From the NCBI GenBank assembly GCA_964247055.1, contig OZ176055.1:8122001-8186000 (forward strand): a DNA stretch of 64,000 nucleotides, written 5' to 3'. This document shows positions 3,001-57,105 of this stretch, piece after piece. Below the pieces are notes generated by a model. The model was given only the letters and a program-made list of their open reading frames with translations. It made no database searches and had not been told where the DNA came from. The position numbers and the translations under genes were made by a program. Source of the stretch: Paragordius varius (taxonomy: Eukaryota > Animalia > Nematomorpha). How positions within the stretch are numbered: position 1 is the first letter of the stretch; each line of letters opens with the position of its first letter.

Positions 3001-5074
3001 GTACTTTGTGAGTTTAAATCAAGGGGTAAACGATATCTTTTTGCCAAACACAATTGAAGTGACTAATAGACCAATAGAATCAATAACAGAAAAGGAGGTA
3101 GAATCTATTTGTTAGAAATGCCAAACAACAAGGCTGTAGGCTTGGACGACATAAATATATATTGTTGGAAAGTGCTTGGAAACGCTGGATTAAATTTCTT
3201 GGAGCGTGTATTTAATAAAGTTGTTTCCATTTATGAAATTCCGGTTGAATGGAAGGAAAGTTTAACTGTGCCTTTATTTAAAGGAAAAGGTGATATAAAT
3301 GAATGTAGTAATTATAGAGGGATAAAACTAATGTCGCACACCATGAATTTGTTTGAAAAAATAATTGAAAAACGAATCAGGAAAATGATATATATATAGA
3401 AAGAAATCAATTTGATTTCATGGCATGAAAGCCATAGACATGCGGTAAAAAAGTATATAAATAGCATTAATTTTTATTTTCTTTATGAATTTTGAAACTG
3501 TACCGGTTCCTAATTTGATATTTGGTTTAAAAGTTATATAACAAGTGGGTGTTGCACAAAAACGTTTTAAATCTAACTCTGGTTTCAAAAATTAAATTAT
3601 GAAACAAAAATCGGTCGGGAAAACTTTAGAACATTTTCCATAAAATAGAAATTCTAGCATCAGTACATAGGCAAAAAAACAGAGCATTTATAAGTTTTTT
3701 ATTTATTTAATCGTTTGTTTTAATATATATTTTGTCCTCGACTTTTGTTTAGCATTGTCCGAACGGTTATATGACACTTGAAAGCTTTAACGAAATACTT
3801 AATTCAATCTTTCCAATCGGAGGTAATTTATTTAGAACATATGAATAGATGCTTCAAGATACGCAAAATATTTTTATTGTTGCTTTGACCTGCATAATAA
3901 TGGTTTGGTGGAATTTAAAGTATAACATAATATTTTTTAACATTATGCACAAATCATTCATTCCTTAGTCATTCGTAGAAACTTTATCCAAATTAAATTT
4001 TGGTACGACCCACGAAAAGGCCCAAATAATTTATAAAATGTATGACCCTTTGGGCCGTGGATACATTGATAAAAAATCGCTTCAGAACATTTTAAATAGC
4101 GTGTATGAATTGGCTGATATAAATTTGGAATCTAAGAAGGAAGTGGTTTCTCAAAAAGCCGATCTAATTTTGATGAAAGTATGATAATATATATTTTTTA
4201 TGAATATATATATACATATTTCGATTTATATATATATATATATATACATATTTCAATTTGTATCATGATTGGTAAAATCGCTTCTTAGAGTGAATTATAT
4301 ATAAATCCTATATATTATTTACTTCATTTTTATATAATGTAAATTATTACGTCAAAATTTTCCATAATATATTGAGTACAGCCATACCACTTTTCTATTA
4401 TTTGATCTAATCGTGTAAAAAAGCACAAAAAGTCCTAACAGTGGTATATTATACGGAAAAAAATGTTATCATACGTTTTTGATACCAAGTAAAAGGCATC
4501 CTAATATTTTAATAGCTTAACCTAAGATAACATTATCACATTAAATTGACCCTGAATATTACATATATCCACTTTCATTCACAATAAAAATAAATTTTGT
4601 ATTTCTGTGCTAGATAAATTATTGGGATTAATATTTTTCCATTAGTTTGGTTAATTATTATTTTTTAAAAAAATGCCAATTAATTTGTTTATATTAATTT
4701 TCTCGGACGGGCGGCATTTTCAAAATATATTAGCATTAAGTAATCTACAAGATTTCAAACACAAAGAAAACATATTATTTTCGCCAAAATTTGGAATAAA
4801 TTATTTAGAAAATTTGTTTGAAACGCGGGCTGCAAAATAAATTCAAGGGTCGTTGGACACCAATGATTCTACAATCTAGTCTGGAAAATTATTCAAAAAA
4901 GTGAATTAAACAAACTAATAAAGTGTGAGTTTTTTTAGCTCAGAGACAAATATCTTTAGGGTTGAAAGAAATATCTATGGTATATCACATATTTTTTACA
5001 CATAGGCTTGCCGTGAAAATAAATCAAAGCGAATAACATTGGAAGAATTTCAACACCTACTGGTAAATGAATGA
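11..5074 (+). CDS. KChIP/neuronal calcium sensor (recoverin-family) EF-hand protein, 5'-partial (upstream exons outside window)
   Basis: Exons 11-65, 3753-3822, 3849-3919, 3969-4178, 5006-5074 join in frame with GT-AG ends. They translate as DSQFHPKELKYMYRMFKQ-HCPNGYMTLESFNEILNSIFPIG-DASRYAKYFYCCFDLHNNGLVEFK-SFVETLSKLNFGTTHEKAQIIYKMYDPLGRGYIDKKSL...-ACRENKSKRITLEEFQHLLVNE*. This parallels KChIP (KELQ.LYRGFK.ECPSG...FP.GDASTYAH..F...FD). Exact orthologue uncertain. Confidence 0.8.
279..1422 (-). mobile_element. Decayed full-length mariner (Mos1/mauritiana-like) DNA transposon in an intron of the KChIP-like gene
   Basis: Imperfect TIRs TCAGGTGTAGTTACAAG (279-) and GACTACACCTGT (-1422) are flanked by TA. 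Minus-strand frameshifted remnants resemble mariner transposase: LRHASLFFHQKKKAKSHR, WVSHNLNERQ, DLAPSD, EEQHFNNYE, LDQWFAPK, EWVKCV. Confidence 0.85.
1483..2900 (-). mobile_element. 5'-truncated RTE-clade LINE (reverse transcriptase 3' half, degenerate) with (TAA)n tail
   Basis: ORF fragments include IPVEWKESLTVPLFK, GNQFGFKPGK, LMYPDDIIIL (YADD-like) and LRWFGHIERK...GKRGRRRSKTKWID (typical RTE C-terminus). (ATT)6 at 1483-1500 is a (TAA) tail on the minus strand. Stops and frameshifts occur throughout. Confidence 0.9.
2905..3445 (+). mobile_element. Second RTE LINE fragment in opposite orientation
   Basis: The translation reads ILKRWKEYF...EMPNNKAVGLDDI...IPVEWKESLTVPLFKGKGDINECSNYRGIKLMSHTMNLFEKIIEKR. 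This is the region just upstream of and at the start of an RTE RT domain. Confidence 0.9.
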
Positions 5075-5923
5075 ATAGAGCGTAAGGCCCACCAATCTTT
5101 TTTAAAAAAATTTTTTTTTCATGCTTTTACTGTGATATATATTATATATTAACTTCAAAAACCAATTAATTAGTAAATTATTTATAATAATTGAAACACA
5201 TCTATGACATTGTATTATATATATATATATATATGTAATAATTAATTATGCTTTTCCCACAAAACTTTTTAGCAAAATTAATTACAAATCTTATATAAAT
5301 AAATGCATATATTATATTAATATAAATGCATGATAAAGGACCATGTACAATACCACATAGTATAATCATATAATTAAATAAAATGCAAATGTTGAAAAAA
5401 AAATTCCAAAAATTCTAAAAATATCACAAACATTACATGAAGATTCTAGTTTTAGAGATACGATAAAACAGCTTGATTATATATGATTAAAATAATCTAA
5501 TATAAAAATATAATTTGTAAATGCAGTGTATATAGTGAATAAAATGCTTAAAAATTGATCTGATCAATATTATGGCTAAAATGAAGGTAAGATAATAATA
5601 AAAAAATACTTGATATTAATATTATAGATTCCGTTTTCGATGGATATAGTAAATTTAAAATTATCCAGACAAAACACTTAATGACAAATATTTTCATAAA
5701 ACTTATACATAACTAATCAGTTTGCGTGGTAAATAGAGGGAATAAAGAAAATTGTTGATACACCAATTTAATTTTAAATTGTAACTGTATAGTTTGTGCA
5801 GTAGGATATTTTATTTCAAAAATATTTTGCCTTTTAGTTTTTTACGCTTTATCTGTATAAGTTCAATTTTTCCTGTAAATATACATATATATAGATGATT
5901 AAAATAACGCATAAAACATCGCT

Positions 5924-8900
5924 TTAATGTTTGTTAGTAAGAAGACCCGTCTTATAAAATTTGTGGAGTTGATTTTTAGCACAAACATTGTTGCTTGGTA
6001 ACGTTTCATTTTTCCCAGTTCCAGGTTTTCGTATAAGAGCCCTACATTCCTCAGCAGTGTTATTGGAAAAAACTGCATTTAGCGTTGAGGAAGTGGTCGA
6101 ACTTGACATTTGAATCGCCGTATTTTGCTGAGTATTATTCATTATAGAATTGGGGCCCTTACTAATTGTGGTTAGTTCGTTCCCACAATCATTTGTATTG
6201 ATATTTATGCCATCAACATCATCACCATGATTGGTAAGGTTAAGAGATGCTCTATTTTCTGCATTTTTTAAAATATAAAGGGGCATAGAAAATATTGTTA
6301 GAAAAAAATGAACAACACCCTAAGAGAATAAACCAATTTTATTGTCAAAAATCTCAAAAGGTTTATTAAATATGTTTGAGTTTTTTATGTTTGAGCTAAG
6401 TTTACTGGCAATTAACAAAATATTCACATATAATTAAAATGATGGCAGTTACCAAATAATCGTTTTAAAACTTGTTATATACGCAAAAAACGGTTTTTTT
6501 AAGTTTTTTCCCCCAATATTTAACATTATTCATTAGTTTTATATACAAAGGATTTTAGCATTTATTAGCAATCTTCGTATACATTTTATCATATAAATTT
6601 AACTCAACCTATAAGATCTTTTGATGGCACATTCCATAAATTGCGTAACTCATAAATTCTTTCCTCTACGCAAAAAGCAGATAATCTGGCTTCAGCATCT
6701 TGATCCCAGCAATGTTGAACTGTTTCTTTGAAAAATGTGATTGCCTTGAGAAAAAAAACCAATTAAAAACCAAATTTACATCAAACTTTAAACAGAACAG
6801 AGAAATTCTATGACGGTGTTTTTTTGAGTTGAAAGCAAAAAATATTATTTGGTTTATCGCCGATGATTAATTAACAATACAAATATTATTATCATAGATA
6901 TTTATTTATATTACAAGACTGAAAATTTATTAAAAAAATAATGATACGGTATCTAATCTCTTTTGTGTTATATCAGACTCTCATAATGTTACCAACGTCA
7001 TAAAATAATTATTATCATATATTTCATATTTAAATTTATTACTATTTATAAAATTAAATTAATTTTATCTATAAGTATTCTAAAAGGTTAAAATAATTTA
7101 CATTATAATGCGTAGTTTTCTCAATTTTGCTATTACATTTTATGTTGTAATTATTTAAAGTTGACTTACCTTCCTGAAAGGTTAATATTATTAGTATTTT
7201 AGAGCCCTCATTTGAGTCAAAAAAAGTAAAGGAAAAAAAACTATTTATTATGTCATATATCTGCAGAGACATATTAAATAATATTTGTCAGTAAAAATTT
7301 TGAATAATAATCATAATTATACGGTTTCAAAAAAGGGAAATATACCTTTATGTGAAAGCGAAGGTTTATTCTAACACTCTTTATTTGAAAAACAATAAAA
7401 AGGATAATCAAATGAAAACGCAAATAAAATTTGTTAGGATAAAGCAACATTTTTTCACGTTAAAACAACATTTTTTCAGTCAAAAGCAACATTTTTTGCA
7501 AGCAAACGCAACACTTTTTCAAGTAAAAACAAGTAAAAAAATGTAGCATTTGCTTGAAAAATTGTTGCTTTTGATCGAAAAATGTAGTCATACCTCATCA
7601 GTCTTCCATTCTTCCGGGAATATTGGTCGACATTTATTTCTGGCTACAATGACTTGCATATCCTCAAAGGTGGGATGTAGACCCACATCTTTTTGAAACG
7701 GTAATTCATATGGTAAAACTTCACAATCTAGCAAAACAAAAAATATAAATTGTTTAATTTGAAAAAATTTTTTTTACTCTTTATCAGAGGTTAAAAATAT
7801 GGAGAAATTATATTTTTAACAACAAAACACAAAAAAATTGAACTAATTGATGAAAGGTATTAATTTAGAGGTAATTATCCACAAAAACATTTTTAATGAT
7901 AAGCTAAGAAGATAATAAATGATCACACAATAATTTTAGTAATTAAAAAACTAAAATATGTATGTGTAAAAATACGTAGATATACAGTAAATATTGAAAA
8001 TATACGGATAAAGCGTAAATATATATAAACAAATATTTTTTTTCCAAAAAACAACCATAATTTTTAAATCTTAATTTTTGTATTAAATAGAGGTGTATAT
8101 TACTAAATTTAATTATTTAATTTACAATCGTAAAATAAACAAGCTATATAGAAAAATTAAGATTTAAAAAATGGTTGTCTTTTGAAAAAAAATTTTTCTT
8201 TTTATTTTCACCTAATTTTCCGTATAATTTCAATTATTACTGTAAATCACAAAAACTCTCCCGTTTGAAAACAATTAACTAAACGCATACTCTAAAAAAT
8301 ATAATATAGAAACTATGTGGGTGACGACAATGGGTTGTTAAACAAGATTCGTGTTAACGTCGTGAATAATGAAAGAAAATGAAAATAAATTTATTATAGA
8401 ATACTCAAGTTTTTTTAAAAAAAACTCCTGATGATGCCATTGGGCGAAAATTTGAGTCTATAATAAATTTATTTTTATTATCTTTCATTATTCACGACGT
8501 TAAAACGAATCTTACATAATAAAAAAAGACATTAATTAAATCAAAAAACGATCAAAAAAAAGATATAAACCATTTTTATATAAGTGAGAACATCGACGTG
8601 CAACTTCCCACATAACAAGAGAAAAGGCATAAATATCGACTTGTTTAAGGGCAGCTTCACAATCCCTCAAATTGATTGAGCCCTCCAAAACCTCAGGTGC
8701 CATATAACGAATAGTTCCAACCTACAAAGAAAAAAAACCCACAAAAAATTGAATTAAAATTTTAAAAAAATTATATGAAAAAAGTTATAAAATTAATTAA
8801 GTGTGCTATAATAAAATGAGAAAAGGTAAAATATTATAAATGACTGAAATCCATAAAAAATAAAAAAAAATAATTATATTTTAAAAAAGAAATCCAAAAA

Positions 8901-54525: not shown

Positions 54526-57105
54526 TTAAGAAATGGTAGATAAATAATCTTTAATTTCATTATTATTTAATCGTTTAAATCCTTTTTGATTACAAACACC
54601 GACTTCAATGTTAGTTTCATTAATTTGGCCCTCAAAATTTTCTTTTAGCGTTAAAATTGCCGTGTGTATAGCATCTTCAAGCTCAATATCTTCATTATAT
54701 CTATCAGAATTTGTAATTTGGTAATATTATTTTACTAATAACAGTTGTTAAAATCCGTAAGATAACGATAAAGGAAAATTTAATAGAATTAAATGAAAGT
54801 ATAAATAGAAATTATAAACGATATGTGAAACCCTTCGTCAATATTAATCGTAGACTAGTTTCGTGCTTGTTAGCACTCATCAGTACGACACAACTATTTG
54901 ACTTGACTTGGGGTTTTCACATATCGATTTCGTATATAAATCCAACTTGGCAATTTTGGTATAAATGCAGTTAGTTATACGAATCTAAATTAAATTTAAT
55001 GGAATTTATGAAAATTAAACTGAAAATTTGAAATATAATTTCTATATATACTTTCATTTAATTCTATTTATTTTTCCTTTATCGTTCGTTATCTTACGAA
55101 TTTTAACAATGTTATTACAAAACATAACCAATCCGTTATATACCATTACAAAATATTATTTTACGAATTAATAATTCAAACAATTGCCGAAGTATGATTA
55201 AATTTAAAAATAAAATTCAGTGAAATCATAGTAATAGGTACAAAAGTTTTATAATGTAACCGATTAAATTGCAAAAAATAAAATATATATAAAATAAAAT
55301 TAATGTAAAACAAGCGTAAACACCCCTTAAAATTACCCAAAATCATATTACAAAAATTATTAATAGAATTAAATTATATGTAAAAATACTCACCCAAATC
55401 ACATTAAAAAACTTGAATATTCAAAAAAAACGCAAATATTATTAAAATGTTGAATAAGGTTAAAAAATTGAAAAATATCAGTAACCTTTTTTCAAGAAAC
55501 GTTCTACCATTAATACAATTCTTTCCTAAAGCCGTGGCTTTCCATGCAAAATATGCTCCCTAAAGACACATAGAAAATTTTAATAATATAAAACTTATTG
55601 AATGCAATATATAAATGATTTAAATATCTATGTTATTTCTACTATAAAAATATTTAAATAAGATGACTTTTAACACTATTAGTTGTTCGCACAAAGAGCG
55701 TGCAATAATTCAATATTATTAAAATGATTTCATTTGTTTACAATTTTTGCAACTTTAATTATATTCATAAAGAAACTTTTTGCATTTTAAAATCAAATAT
55801 AATTCTCAATACTTTTTATCACAAATAAGAATTGAGATTTTATATGAATAAATCTCCGTAATTTTTTTAATAGGTTTGACTAAATAATTTAGTAAAGTTT
55901 AATTGTATTTTATTTGTCGTACCGAAGGATCACATTGATATAGAAATGGTTTATTTAAATCATCATCCCATCCAGCGATAAGTAAGGAGACTCCAAAAGG
56001 ACGTACACCTCTATCATAAAAAGTTAATGTTAAAAATCATATTTTTTAAATATATAATTACCAGATTTAAATGTTTAAAGTTTAATATAAAATTAAAAAA
56101 AGTCATAAATACAAATCATTAAAAGACAACATTTTTTGATCTTTTAATATCTTCAAAATAAATTATGTGATTCCATGTGTGAATATAGAAATGAGTGTGC
56201 TAGCAATTTAAATCTCTATTTCTTATTGCGCAAACCAAATCAATAGGTTATTGGTTGAGAAATTAATATTTAAAAAATATACTTTTTTAATCAAAATAAA
56301 TATAATTTTGTACTCAATCATACGATTTGTTTTATATATTCATCTTTTTACTGTAACTTTCGAATTCCCTACCCAGATTGAGTATAATTTTGGACAACGG
56401 CAGCAATTTTTTGAACCAATTGATTGGGTGACACATTTTCGCCATAAACAAGTTGATAATTTTGAGCTATTCTCCGACCCTCTTTAACCAATAACCTTTA
56501 AAAGGAATTATATAATTTTAATTCCGCAATTTAGTTTATTACTTTTTAAAATATTTTGTGATAAATAATTAAGTGAGTAAAAAACGCTTTAAAATATATA
56601 GAATTTTAACTTGATCATTCTATAATTAGACCAGAACATGTTTATATAAATATTTATTATTTCCAAATAAAAATTATGGAGAGTGAAAGCCCGCTTTCGC
56701 TGATTTTTCACGCAAAAGTTCATTTACATTTTTATGCCGATCAAAAAATATATAATCCGAAATTAATGTAATTTTTGTGAAGTAATTAAAAAATGATTTT
56801 TAACCTAAAATCAGGACCTAAGCCACTGTAAGTCATCCCACAATTTGCGGATAGAGCTTCAACTTTTCTTACGCTTGACTCATCGTACAAAGGGGATTTA
56901 AACTTTTTTTCAGAAGCAATAACAACTCCATTTTTGGCTTAAAATATTAAAACATAAATACGAACCTTTAATCCCGAGAGAAGGTGCTCCCGCAGCCACT
57001 GCCGCTAAAGCATACTCAATCTGAACCAGTTTTCCTGAAGGACTATTAGTTAAAATAAAAGTTCAACCTAAAAGTTGTCAAAGAAAATGAATATTTTTCA
57101 CTCAT
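54526..57105 (-). CDS. PSMA2: Proteasome subunit alpha type-2, 7 exons, 235 aa
   Basis: Exons (minus): 57105-57068, 57042-56966, 56937-56805, 56495-56373, 56010-55923, 55559-55486, 54700-54526, totalling 708 nt. Translation: [44 protein letters not shown]...[20 protein letters not shown]...[17 protein letters not shown]...[25 protein letters not shown]. Confidence 0.97.
54737..55116. mobile_element. Nested-hairpin element (~80-bp outer arms, 15-bp inner arms) carrying a hammerhead ribozyme; probably Penelope-like-element derived
   Basis: Outer arms 54737-54816 / 55034-55116 are near reverse complements. Inner arms are CGATATGTGAAACCC 54819-54833 / GGGTTTTCACATATCG 54911-54926. Confidence 0.75.
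54848..54888 (-). ncRNA. Minimal type I hammerhead ribozyme (PLE type, palindromic stem III)
   Basis: The minus strand reads TCGTA-CTGATGA-GTGCT-AACA-AGCAC-GAA-ACTAGT-C-TACGA. It has a 5-bp stem I, an exact CUGAUGA/GAAA core, a 5-bp stem II and a self-complementary ACUAGU. The GUC cleavage triplet places the cut after 54853. Confidence 0.88.

Follow-up and report, generated by a model that had tools for sequence, protein, structure and literature searches.

We wondered what a hammerhead ribozyme with an apparently complete core might be doing in the last intron of the essential proteasome gene PSMA2, and whether it acts on its host gene or is merely carried along by it. The motif lies at 54848-54888 in the 64,000 nucleotides of DNA analysed here (the window). 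The last PSMA2 intron (54701-55485, minus strand, 785 nt) opens with GT at 55485-55484 and closes with AG at 54702-54701, and its limits follow from the translations of the penultimate exon (55486-55559, minus strand) and of the last exon (54529-54700, minus strand), the latter starting with a (R) and ending in STIS followed by a stop codon. The PSMA2 exons were searched one by one, each as a separate query; the last exon matched residues 178-233 of 'proteasome subunit alpha type-2' in the PDB with an E-value of 2e-23 and is single-copy in the 110.6-Mb genome. Because gene and motif are both encoded on the minus strand, the hammerhead is sense to PSMA2. The splice sites and exon translations thus agree with an initial annotation of this DNA, which had placed a sense hammerhead in intron 54701-55485. 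The predicted cut site is separated from the 5' splice site by 632 nt and from the 3' splice site downstream by 152 nt.

Read on the minus strand from 54888 to 54848, the motif consists of UCGUA, CUGAUGA, the hairpin GUGCU-AACA-AGCAC, GAAA, CUAG, UC and UACGA, with self-cleavage predicted directly after the UC. Stem I (54884-54888 paired with 54848-54852) and stem II (54872-54876 paired with 54863-54867, loop AACA) comprise five perfect base pairs each. The remaining elements on this strand are CUGAUGA (54877-54883), GAAA (54859-54862), the palindrome ACUAGU as stem III region (54854-54859) and C17 (54853). The core nucleotides C3-A9, G12-A14, A15.1, U16.1 and C17 are all there, as is the G10.1-C11.1 pair, and a GUC site puts the predicted cut 3' of C17, between 54853 and 54852. 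Full core, perfect stems, palindrome and cut site had all been named in the initial annotation, and all can be read directly from the letters. Helix III amounts to two base pairs closing a 2-nt loop; it is sterically impossible in a monomer and can form solely as a 6-bp intermolecular duplex. By retaining this 2-bp equivalent of helix III, the hammerhead differs from a strict 'min-HHR'.

A structural descriptor that combines the core with complementary stems had its single match in the window at 54848-54888, and no match in 300 simulated 64-kb windows of equal dinucleotide make-up. An Rfam scan at the gathering threshold found no hammerhead; in E-value mode the best match was Hammerhead_HH9 with 26.2 bits (E 1.9e-4), half of the gathering score of 52. 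The 31-nt hammerhead core has at least 220 matches in the genome at up to 3 mismatches versus 0 for a reversed control, and at least 100 genomic copies carry a 31-nt core identical to that of the copy in the PSMA2 intron. A hammerhead-like sequence arising by chance in AT-rich DNA, for which the Rfam score below threshold could be taken to speak, was rejected on the simulated windows and the reversed-control counts and deserves practically no credence. The sequence confirms a real type-I hammerhead motif, for which self-cleavage is predicted.

The hammerhead sits inside an ORF-less insertion (54740-55151) that makes up 412 of the 785 nt of the intron, is oriented in sense and leaves 39 nt to the 3' splice site downstream. 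The insertion has a GC content of 25.7% and no start-to-stop ORF above 49 aa. Its forward arm (54740-55038, minus strand) corresponds to the ~300-nt segment A of a repeat unit, carries the hammerhead and is 93-94% identical to many genomic copies that share its 5' start. The second arm (55034-55151, plus strand) is inverted and 5'-truncated, comprising the last ~85 nt of segment A and ~35 nt of a segment B. Over 81 aligned columns the two arms are 89% identical. The inverted arm contains no hammerhead, so that the whole intron has a single one. A 17-bp direct repeat, AATATTATTTTAC[T/G]AAT, bounds the whole insertion; the left TSD copy (54723-54739, AATATTATTTTACTAAT), identified by a repeat search, and the right TSD copy (55152-55168, AATATTATTTTACGAAT) are identical at 16 of 17 positions. 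We rejected a forward arm reaching the 3' splice site, as a comparison of four copies puts the end of the arm at 54740.

BLAST of 54740-55115 against the genome returned at least 144 pieces. The family unit spans ~455 nt, of which the first ~303 nt are segment A, where the hammerhead lies, and the next ~152 nt segment B. Two arrangements were found, namely head-to-tail tandems repeating every 444-455 nt and (-)(+) head-to-head pairs with a variable spacing of 191-638 nt. The family is also dispersed, and thus represents a short multi-copy hammerhead repeat that is both tandem and scattered. With at least 220 copies in the family, the motif is nothing peculiar to PSMA2. Abundant transcripts of such a family could in principle provide a dimer partner in trans.

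The PSMA2 copy was aligned with three other copies (L002, L003 and L008). In all four the arms terminate at the same two unit positions, the arm junctions vary from copy to copy, and each of the three other copies has a TSD of its own (13-17 bp). Judging from this alignment, the four are independent retro-insertions and not copies of a fixed-terminal-repeat MITE. Inverted repeats of ~75-90 bp near both ends, together with the flanking direct repeat, would also be expected of a MITE-like DNA transposon with terminal inverted repeats around the hammerhead. However, the length and junction of the inverted arm differ per copy, the arms end at different unit positions, other copies are arrayed head-to-tail at intervals of 455 nt, and the TSD length is not constant. 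The MITE reading was rejected after the four-copy comparison and is extremely improbable.

By its sequence and arrangement, the retro-inserted family is of a known kind, that of the animal retrozymes or Penelope-type hammerhead elements. Animal non-LTR retrozymes are tandem or dispersed type-I hammerhead repeats of 150-450 bp (Cervera & de la Peña 2020, PMC7229834; Li, Clavereau & Pollet 2026, 10.64898/2026.07.22.740005). Like these, the family is small, ORF-less and low in GC, has a type-I hammerhead and TSDs, and occurs as tandems with a ~455-nt period plus dispersed monomers; its short palindromic helix III is also found in those amphibian retrozymes that require dimers. The likeness is drawn from DNA sequence. 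Unlike a retrozyme, the PSMA2 copy is a monomer with an inverted truncated arm and cannot release a circle by two cuts.

The likeness to Penelope elements is equally close in some respects and absent in others. Metazoan retroelement and Penelope hammerheads have a very short palindromic helix III and are thought to act as dimers (PMC4209133, PMC6765202), which fits the earlier statement that the form of helix III seen here is typical of Penelope-type hammerheads. The Penelope pLTR hammerheads share type I and a tiny palindromic helix III with our motif (Cervera & de la Peña 2014, PMC4209133; Lünse et al. 2016/17, quoted in PMC6765202). Like Penelope-like elements, the family shows a head-to-head and tandem architecture with variable TSD, and the genome has Penelope-like ORFs with RT and GIY-YIG, the RT being assigned by look-alikes. 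In contrast to an autonomous Penelope-like element, there is no RT and GIY-YIG ORF between hammerhead-bearing repeats. Going by their description, the Schistosoma Sm-alpha/Sj-alpha SINE-like elements are a further parallel, as short, non-autonomous, multi-copy retroelements with a type-I hammerhead.

Which machinery might mobilise such an element? GIY-YIG matches in the genome lie in open frames of 758-788 aa, often arranged as head-to-head pairs, and one 788-aa frame reached 27 bits for GIY-YIG in the genome scan. Pfam hmmscan of the translated GIY-YIG ORFs at E<=0.01 found no RT and gave nothing for the 788-aa frame, and a PDB search with the GIY-YIG frames found nothing. The Atlas look-alikes of one frame combine HTH_animal, RVT_1 and GIY-YIG (score 0.98), which is the Penelope architecture; the Penelope assignment of these frames comes from the Atlas look-alike search only. 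The hammerhead was absent at the Penelope-like ORF loci examined, and we found no clear homology between the family unit and the ORFs examined there, the sole similarity being a weak one between the 3' tail of one Penelope-like locus and the unit (32 nt, 81%, E 0.06). No RT/GIY-YIG ORF lies within the 412-nt insertion or adjoins the PSMA2 copy.

A Penelope-like element is a plausible candidate for the mobilising partner of the family. Both strands are nicked and extended by PLE enzymes, with internal initiation (PMC11167929), and animal retrozymes have been argued to be non-autonomous PLE derivatives (10.64898/2026.07.22.740005). The element in the PSMA2 intron is most probably a non-autonomous hammerhead-bearing retroelement, an animal non-LTR 'retrozyme' or Penelope derivative. 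Its forward arm, truncated inverted arm and 17-bp TSD form the pattern that target-primed reverse transcription of the Penelope type commonly leaves behind, whose step of both-strand extension we infer for this insertion from the literature.

An intact core might suggest that the ribozyme is maintained by selection. Across 27 other copies the majority frequency was 0.994 in the hammerhead versus 0.97-0.98 in the flanks, a figure to be read with half of these 27 copies having been chosen by an exact hammerhead match. The PSMA2 copy differs from the family majority by ~10 substitutions and a 5-nt duplication in 231 nt (~4.3%), and its hammerhead differs at 1 of 41 positions. This is 54851, where the family has G and the PSMA2 copy A, turning a U.G wobble into the U-A pair that underlies the perfect stem I of the initial annotation. 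Besides this A, the variants private to the PSMA2 copy include an additional AAGTC at about 54898-54902 and a variant at 54844. At such divergence, a core of ~17 nt would stay untouched by chance in ~47% of cases according to our own arithmetic. Because of this expectation at ~4% divergence, the intact core needs no selection, and on these comparisons conservation in the hammerhead does not exceed that of its flanks. The earlier reading of the unmutated core as a sign of recent insertion or selection therefore loses its second half.

The first half fares better, as the insertion is apparently unfixed. The locus was found in two runs only, X1 and X2, of the same sample, both of which yielded DNA contigs spanning introns; none of the runs recorded as RNA contained it or the family. 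A contig of X2 joins 54739 to 55183 and skips 443 nt, at a depth of 221 out of ~400. On the left it breaks exactly where the left copy of the TSD, itself identified independently, comes to an end; linked differences are present in it at 54658 (T/A), 54685 (A/G) and 55217. The two exonic ones, 54658 and 54685, are synonymous third positions by frame (Ala GCA->GCT and Ile ATT->ATC). The X2 contig appears to be an empty-site allele at about half frequency, the insertion thus not being fixed; this was read from one Logan contig whose counterpart is absent from the listed contigs of X1, whose letters at the joint are given as 'not known' and whose right break overshoots by 14 nt the position predicted for an exact empty site. 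Other parts of the genome also show high heterozygosity in this sample. The insertion is of some age, as its arms differ by 11% and its TSD copies at one position; given the heterozygosity of the sample and this arm difference, it can be polymorphic without being very young. As an allele lacking it apparently occurs in the same sample, the insertion would still be segregating.

Would the hammerhead cleave the PSMA2 pre-mRNA? In isolation, the 41-mer is predicted to prefer a misfold that pairs core nucleotides C3-G5 (-10.0 vs -7.9 kcal/mol). In the RNAfold MFE structure of the whole intron, a long RNA hairpin is predicted (54728-55124, minus strand): 55124-55034 pair with 54728-54816 in three helices that total ~83 paired bases, and the hammerhead domain lies enclosed by them. 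In the whole intron, stem II has a probability of 0.9-1.0 and stem I of ~0.25, and the fully competent secondary structure accounts for ~0.2% of the predicted whole-intron ensemble; for AT-rich RNA such thermodynamic predictions are rough. At the end of the long hairpin, the hammerhead would accordingly adopt an inactive fold for the most part. The intermolecular ACUAGU duplex is estimated at -4.8 to -6.2 kcal/mol, corresponding to a Kd of ~40-400 µM, where the dimer energy is that of the isolated 6-bp duplex, as the pairs of the dimer cross in concatenated strands and RNAcofold cannot represent it. By our own estimate of the pre-mRNA concentration (~pM to low µM), we infer that this Kd would lie far above any plausible value.

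These predictions fit with what is reported for related ribozymes. Single Penelope min-hammerheads show no detectable cleavage and their dimers low activity (PMC4209133, PMC6765202), and amphibian retrozyme motifs are weak as monomers and efficient as dimers (PMC7229834). Efficient cleavage as dimers, which the initial annotation had ascribed to hammerheads of this form, therefore holds for the amphibian retrozymes and is overstated for the Penelope min-hammerheads. Its expectation that monomeric pre-mRNA is largely spared agrees with the folding predictions. As cited in PMC10919898, Fong 2009 reported splicing to be disturbed by fast intronic ribozymes only, not by slow ones. In a single PSMA2 pre-mRNA, the hammerhead would form no helix III by itself and would find no second hammerhead in cis, and its cleavage before intron removal would be rare or absent.

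It had nevertheless been suggested that cleavage as a dimer could increase at higher transcript levels and so provide feedback on PSMA2 and the proteasome, making the hammerhead a functional regulator. Sense orientation, intact core and palindromic helix III would suit such a role, and there are precedents for it: in amniotes the intronic ribozymes HH9 and HH10 act on the mRNA of their host gene (PMC6155905), and a further case is that of the CPEB3 ribozyme (PMC10919898). Like HH9 in RECK and HH10 in CTCL, our motif is type I and lies in sense orientation in an intron of a protein-coding gene. However, HH9 and HH10 are single, ultraconserved at orthologous sites and equipped with tertiary contacts (de la Peña & García-Robles 2010, quoted in PMC6155905). 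In contrast, the PSMA2 motif is one of many family copies, is conserved no better than its flanks, and has an apparent insertion-free allele in the same sample. The intron has one hammerhead, the 6-bp dimer contact is weak at the estimated concentrations, and with the cut site 152 nt before the 3' splice site only seconds would pass until the intron is complete. Concentration-dependent feedback finds no footing in these results; a role in proteasome feedback is unsupported, and a regulatory hammerhead is very unlikely. The motif would have no designed role in PSMA2 expression.

The hammerhead is thus, with high probability, a passenger: a copy of a segregating retro-insertion that happens to lie in sense orientation and most likely cleaves the pre-mRNA rarely or never. 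What this analysis adds is an apparent allele with an empty site, along with kinetic and thermodynamic arguments against a regulatory function. A perfect-looking ribozyme within an essential gene need not signal regulation.

A passenger ribozyme could still be part of an insertion that alters PSMA2 output by other routes, as a segregating expression variant that is either neutral or mildly deleterious. Its ~83-bp dsRNA hairpin might be a target for editing or dicing, or the use of the branch point or 3' splice site might be altered. Points in favour of such an effect are the predicted long hairpin itself, the distance of 39 nt to the 3' splice site, the apparent polymorphism and the reported depletion of retrozymes from Xenopus introns (bioRxiv 10.64898/2026.07.22.740005). 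On the other hand, the exon-adjacent 39 nt are unaltered by the insertion, and the assembled insertion haplotype is otherwise an intact, single-copy essential gene. We regard this possibility as unlikely, and the passenger reading as the better account of the locus.

Likewise unlikely is a measurably lowered PSMA2 output from the insertion's own allele, brought about either by trans-dimers with family transcripts that share ACUAGU or by the ~83-bp hairpin. If true, a retroelement bearing a ribozyme would have produced natural variation in the expression of an essential proteasome gene. Whether hammerhead retroelements in sense orientation within introns carry a cost for their host gene is a question raised by the reported intron depletion of retrozymes. 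Since the insertion appears to be heterozygous and the alleles differ at two synonymous sites of the last exon, allele-specific expression is readable at this locus, which provides a ready-made test of such an expression cost.

Comparison of four independent insertions of the retrozyme family, namely the copy in the last intron of PSMA2 and three further genomic copies (L002, L003 and L008), revealed that both arms end at fixed places. In all four, the forward arm stops at a single unit position (...AACTGTTATTA). The end of the inverted arm is also constant and falls at a different unit position (...CCATTACAA), roughly 35 nt beyond the forward-arm end. In the PSMA2 intron these ends lie at 54740 (forward arm) and 55151 (inverted arm). 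Judged from these four sequences, the two positions probably represent reproducible start points of reverse transcription, recalling a Penelope-like element for which internal initiation has been reported.

Penelope-like open reading frames were found elsewhere in the genome. Frames matching GIY-YIG are present in L033 (G000:C1:4910500-4920499; 3849-6212, minus strand, 788 aa) and in L034 (G000:C6:302000-311999; 5044-7317, plus strand, 758 aa), arranged as head-to-head pairs with a direct-repeat period of 2,485 nt. Their Atlas look-alikes have Penelope architecture, combining RT and GIY-YIG; Pfam identified no RT in the L033 and L034 frames themselves, and a search of both loci for a hammerhead motif found none. 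In L034, the stop codon of both Penelope-like ORFs is directly followed by a 32-nt stretch (3701-3731 and 7338-7368) with 81% identity to unit positions 215-246 (E 0.06), which lie just 3' of the hammerhead in the retrozyme unit. This similarity is a weak hint that the autonomous element and the retrozyme family might have a 3' tail in common.

The PSMA2-intron copy carries an additional AAGTC at 54898-54902, upstream of stem I, which is a tandem 5-nt duplication. Because most family copies lack it, the duplication is useful as a private marker when reads have to be assigned to this locus. The insertion also contains, at its 3' end, a UUUUAAC heptamer (54747-54753, minus strand) that precedes the 3' splice site of PSMA2 by ~47-50 nt; by its sequence, this heptamer is a putative, branch-point-like element.

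DNA contigs further revealed that the sequenced sample holds two strongly diverged haplotypes across the whole PSMA2 locus. Window positions 56890-57070 exemplify this, with ~10 differences within 57015-57070 as well as several small indels, all of them present at roughly half depth.
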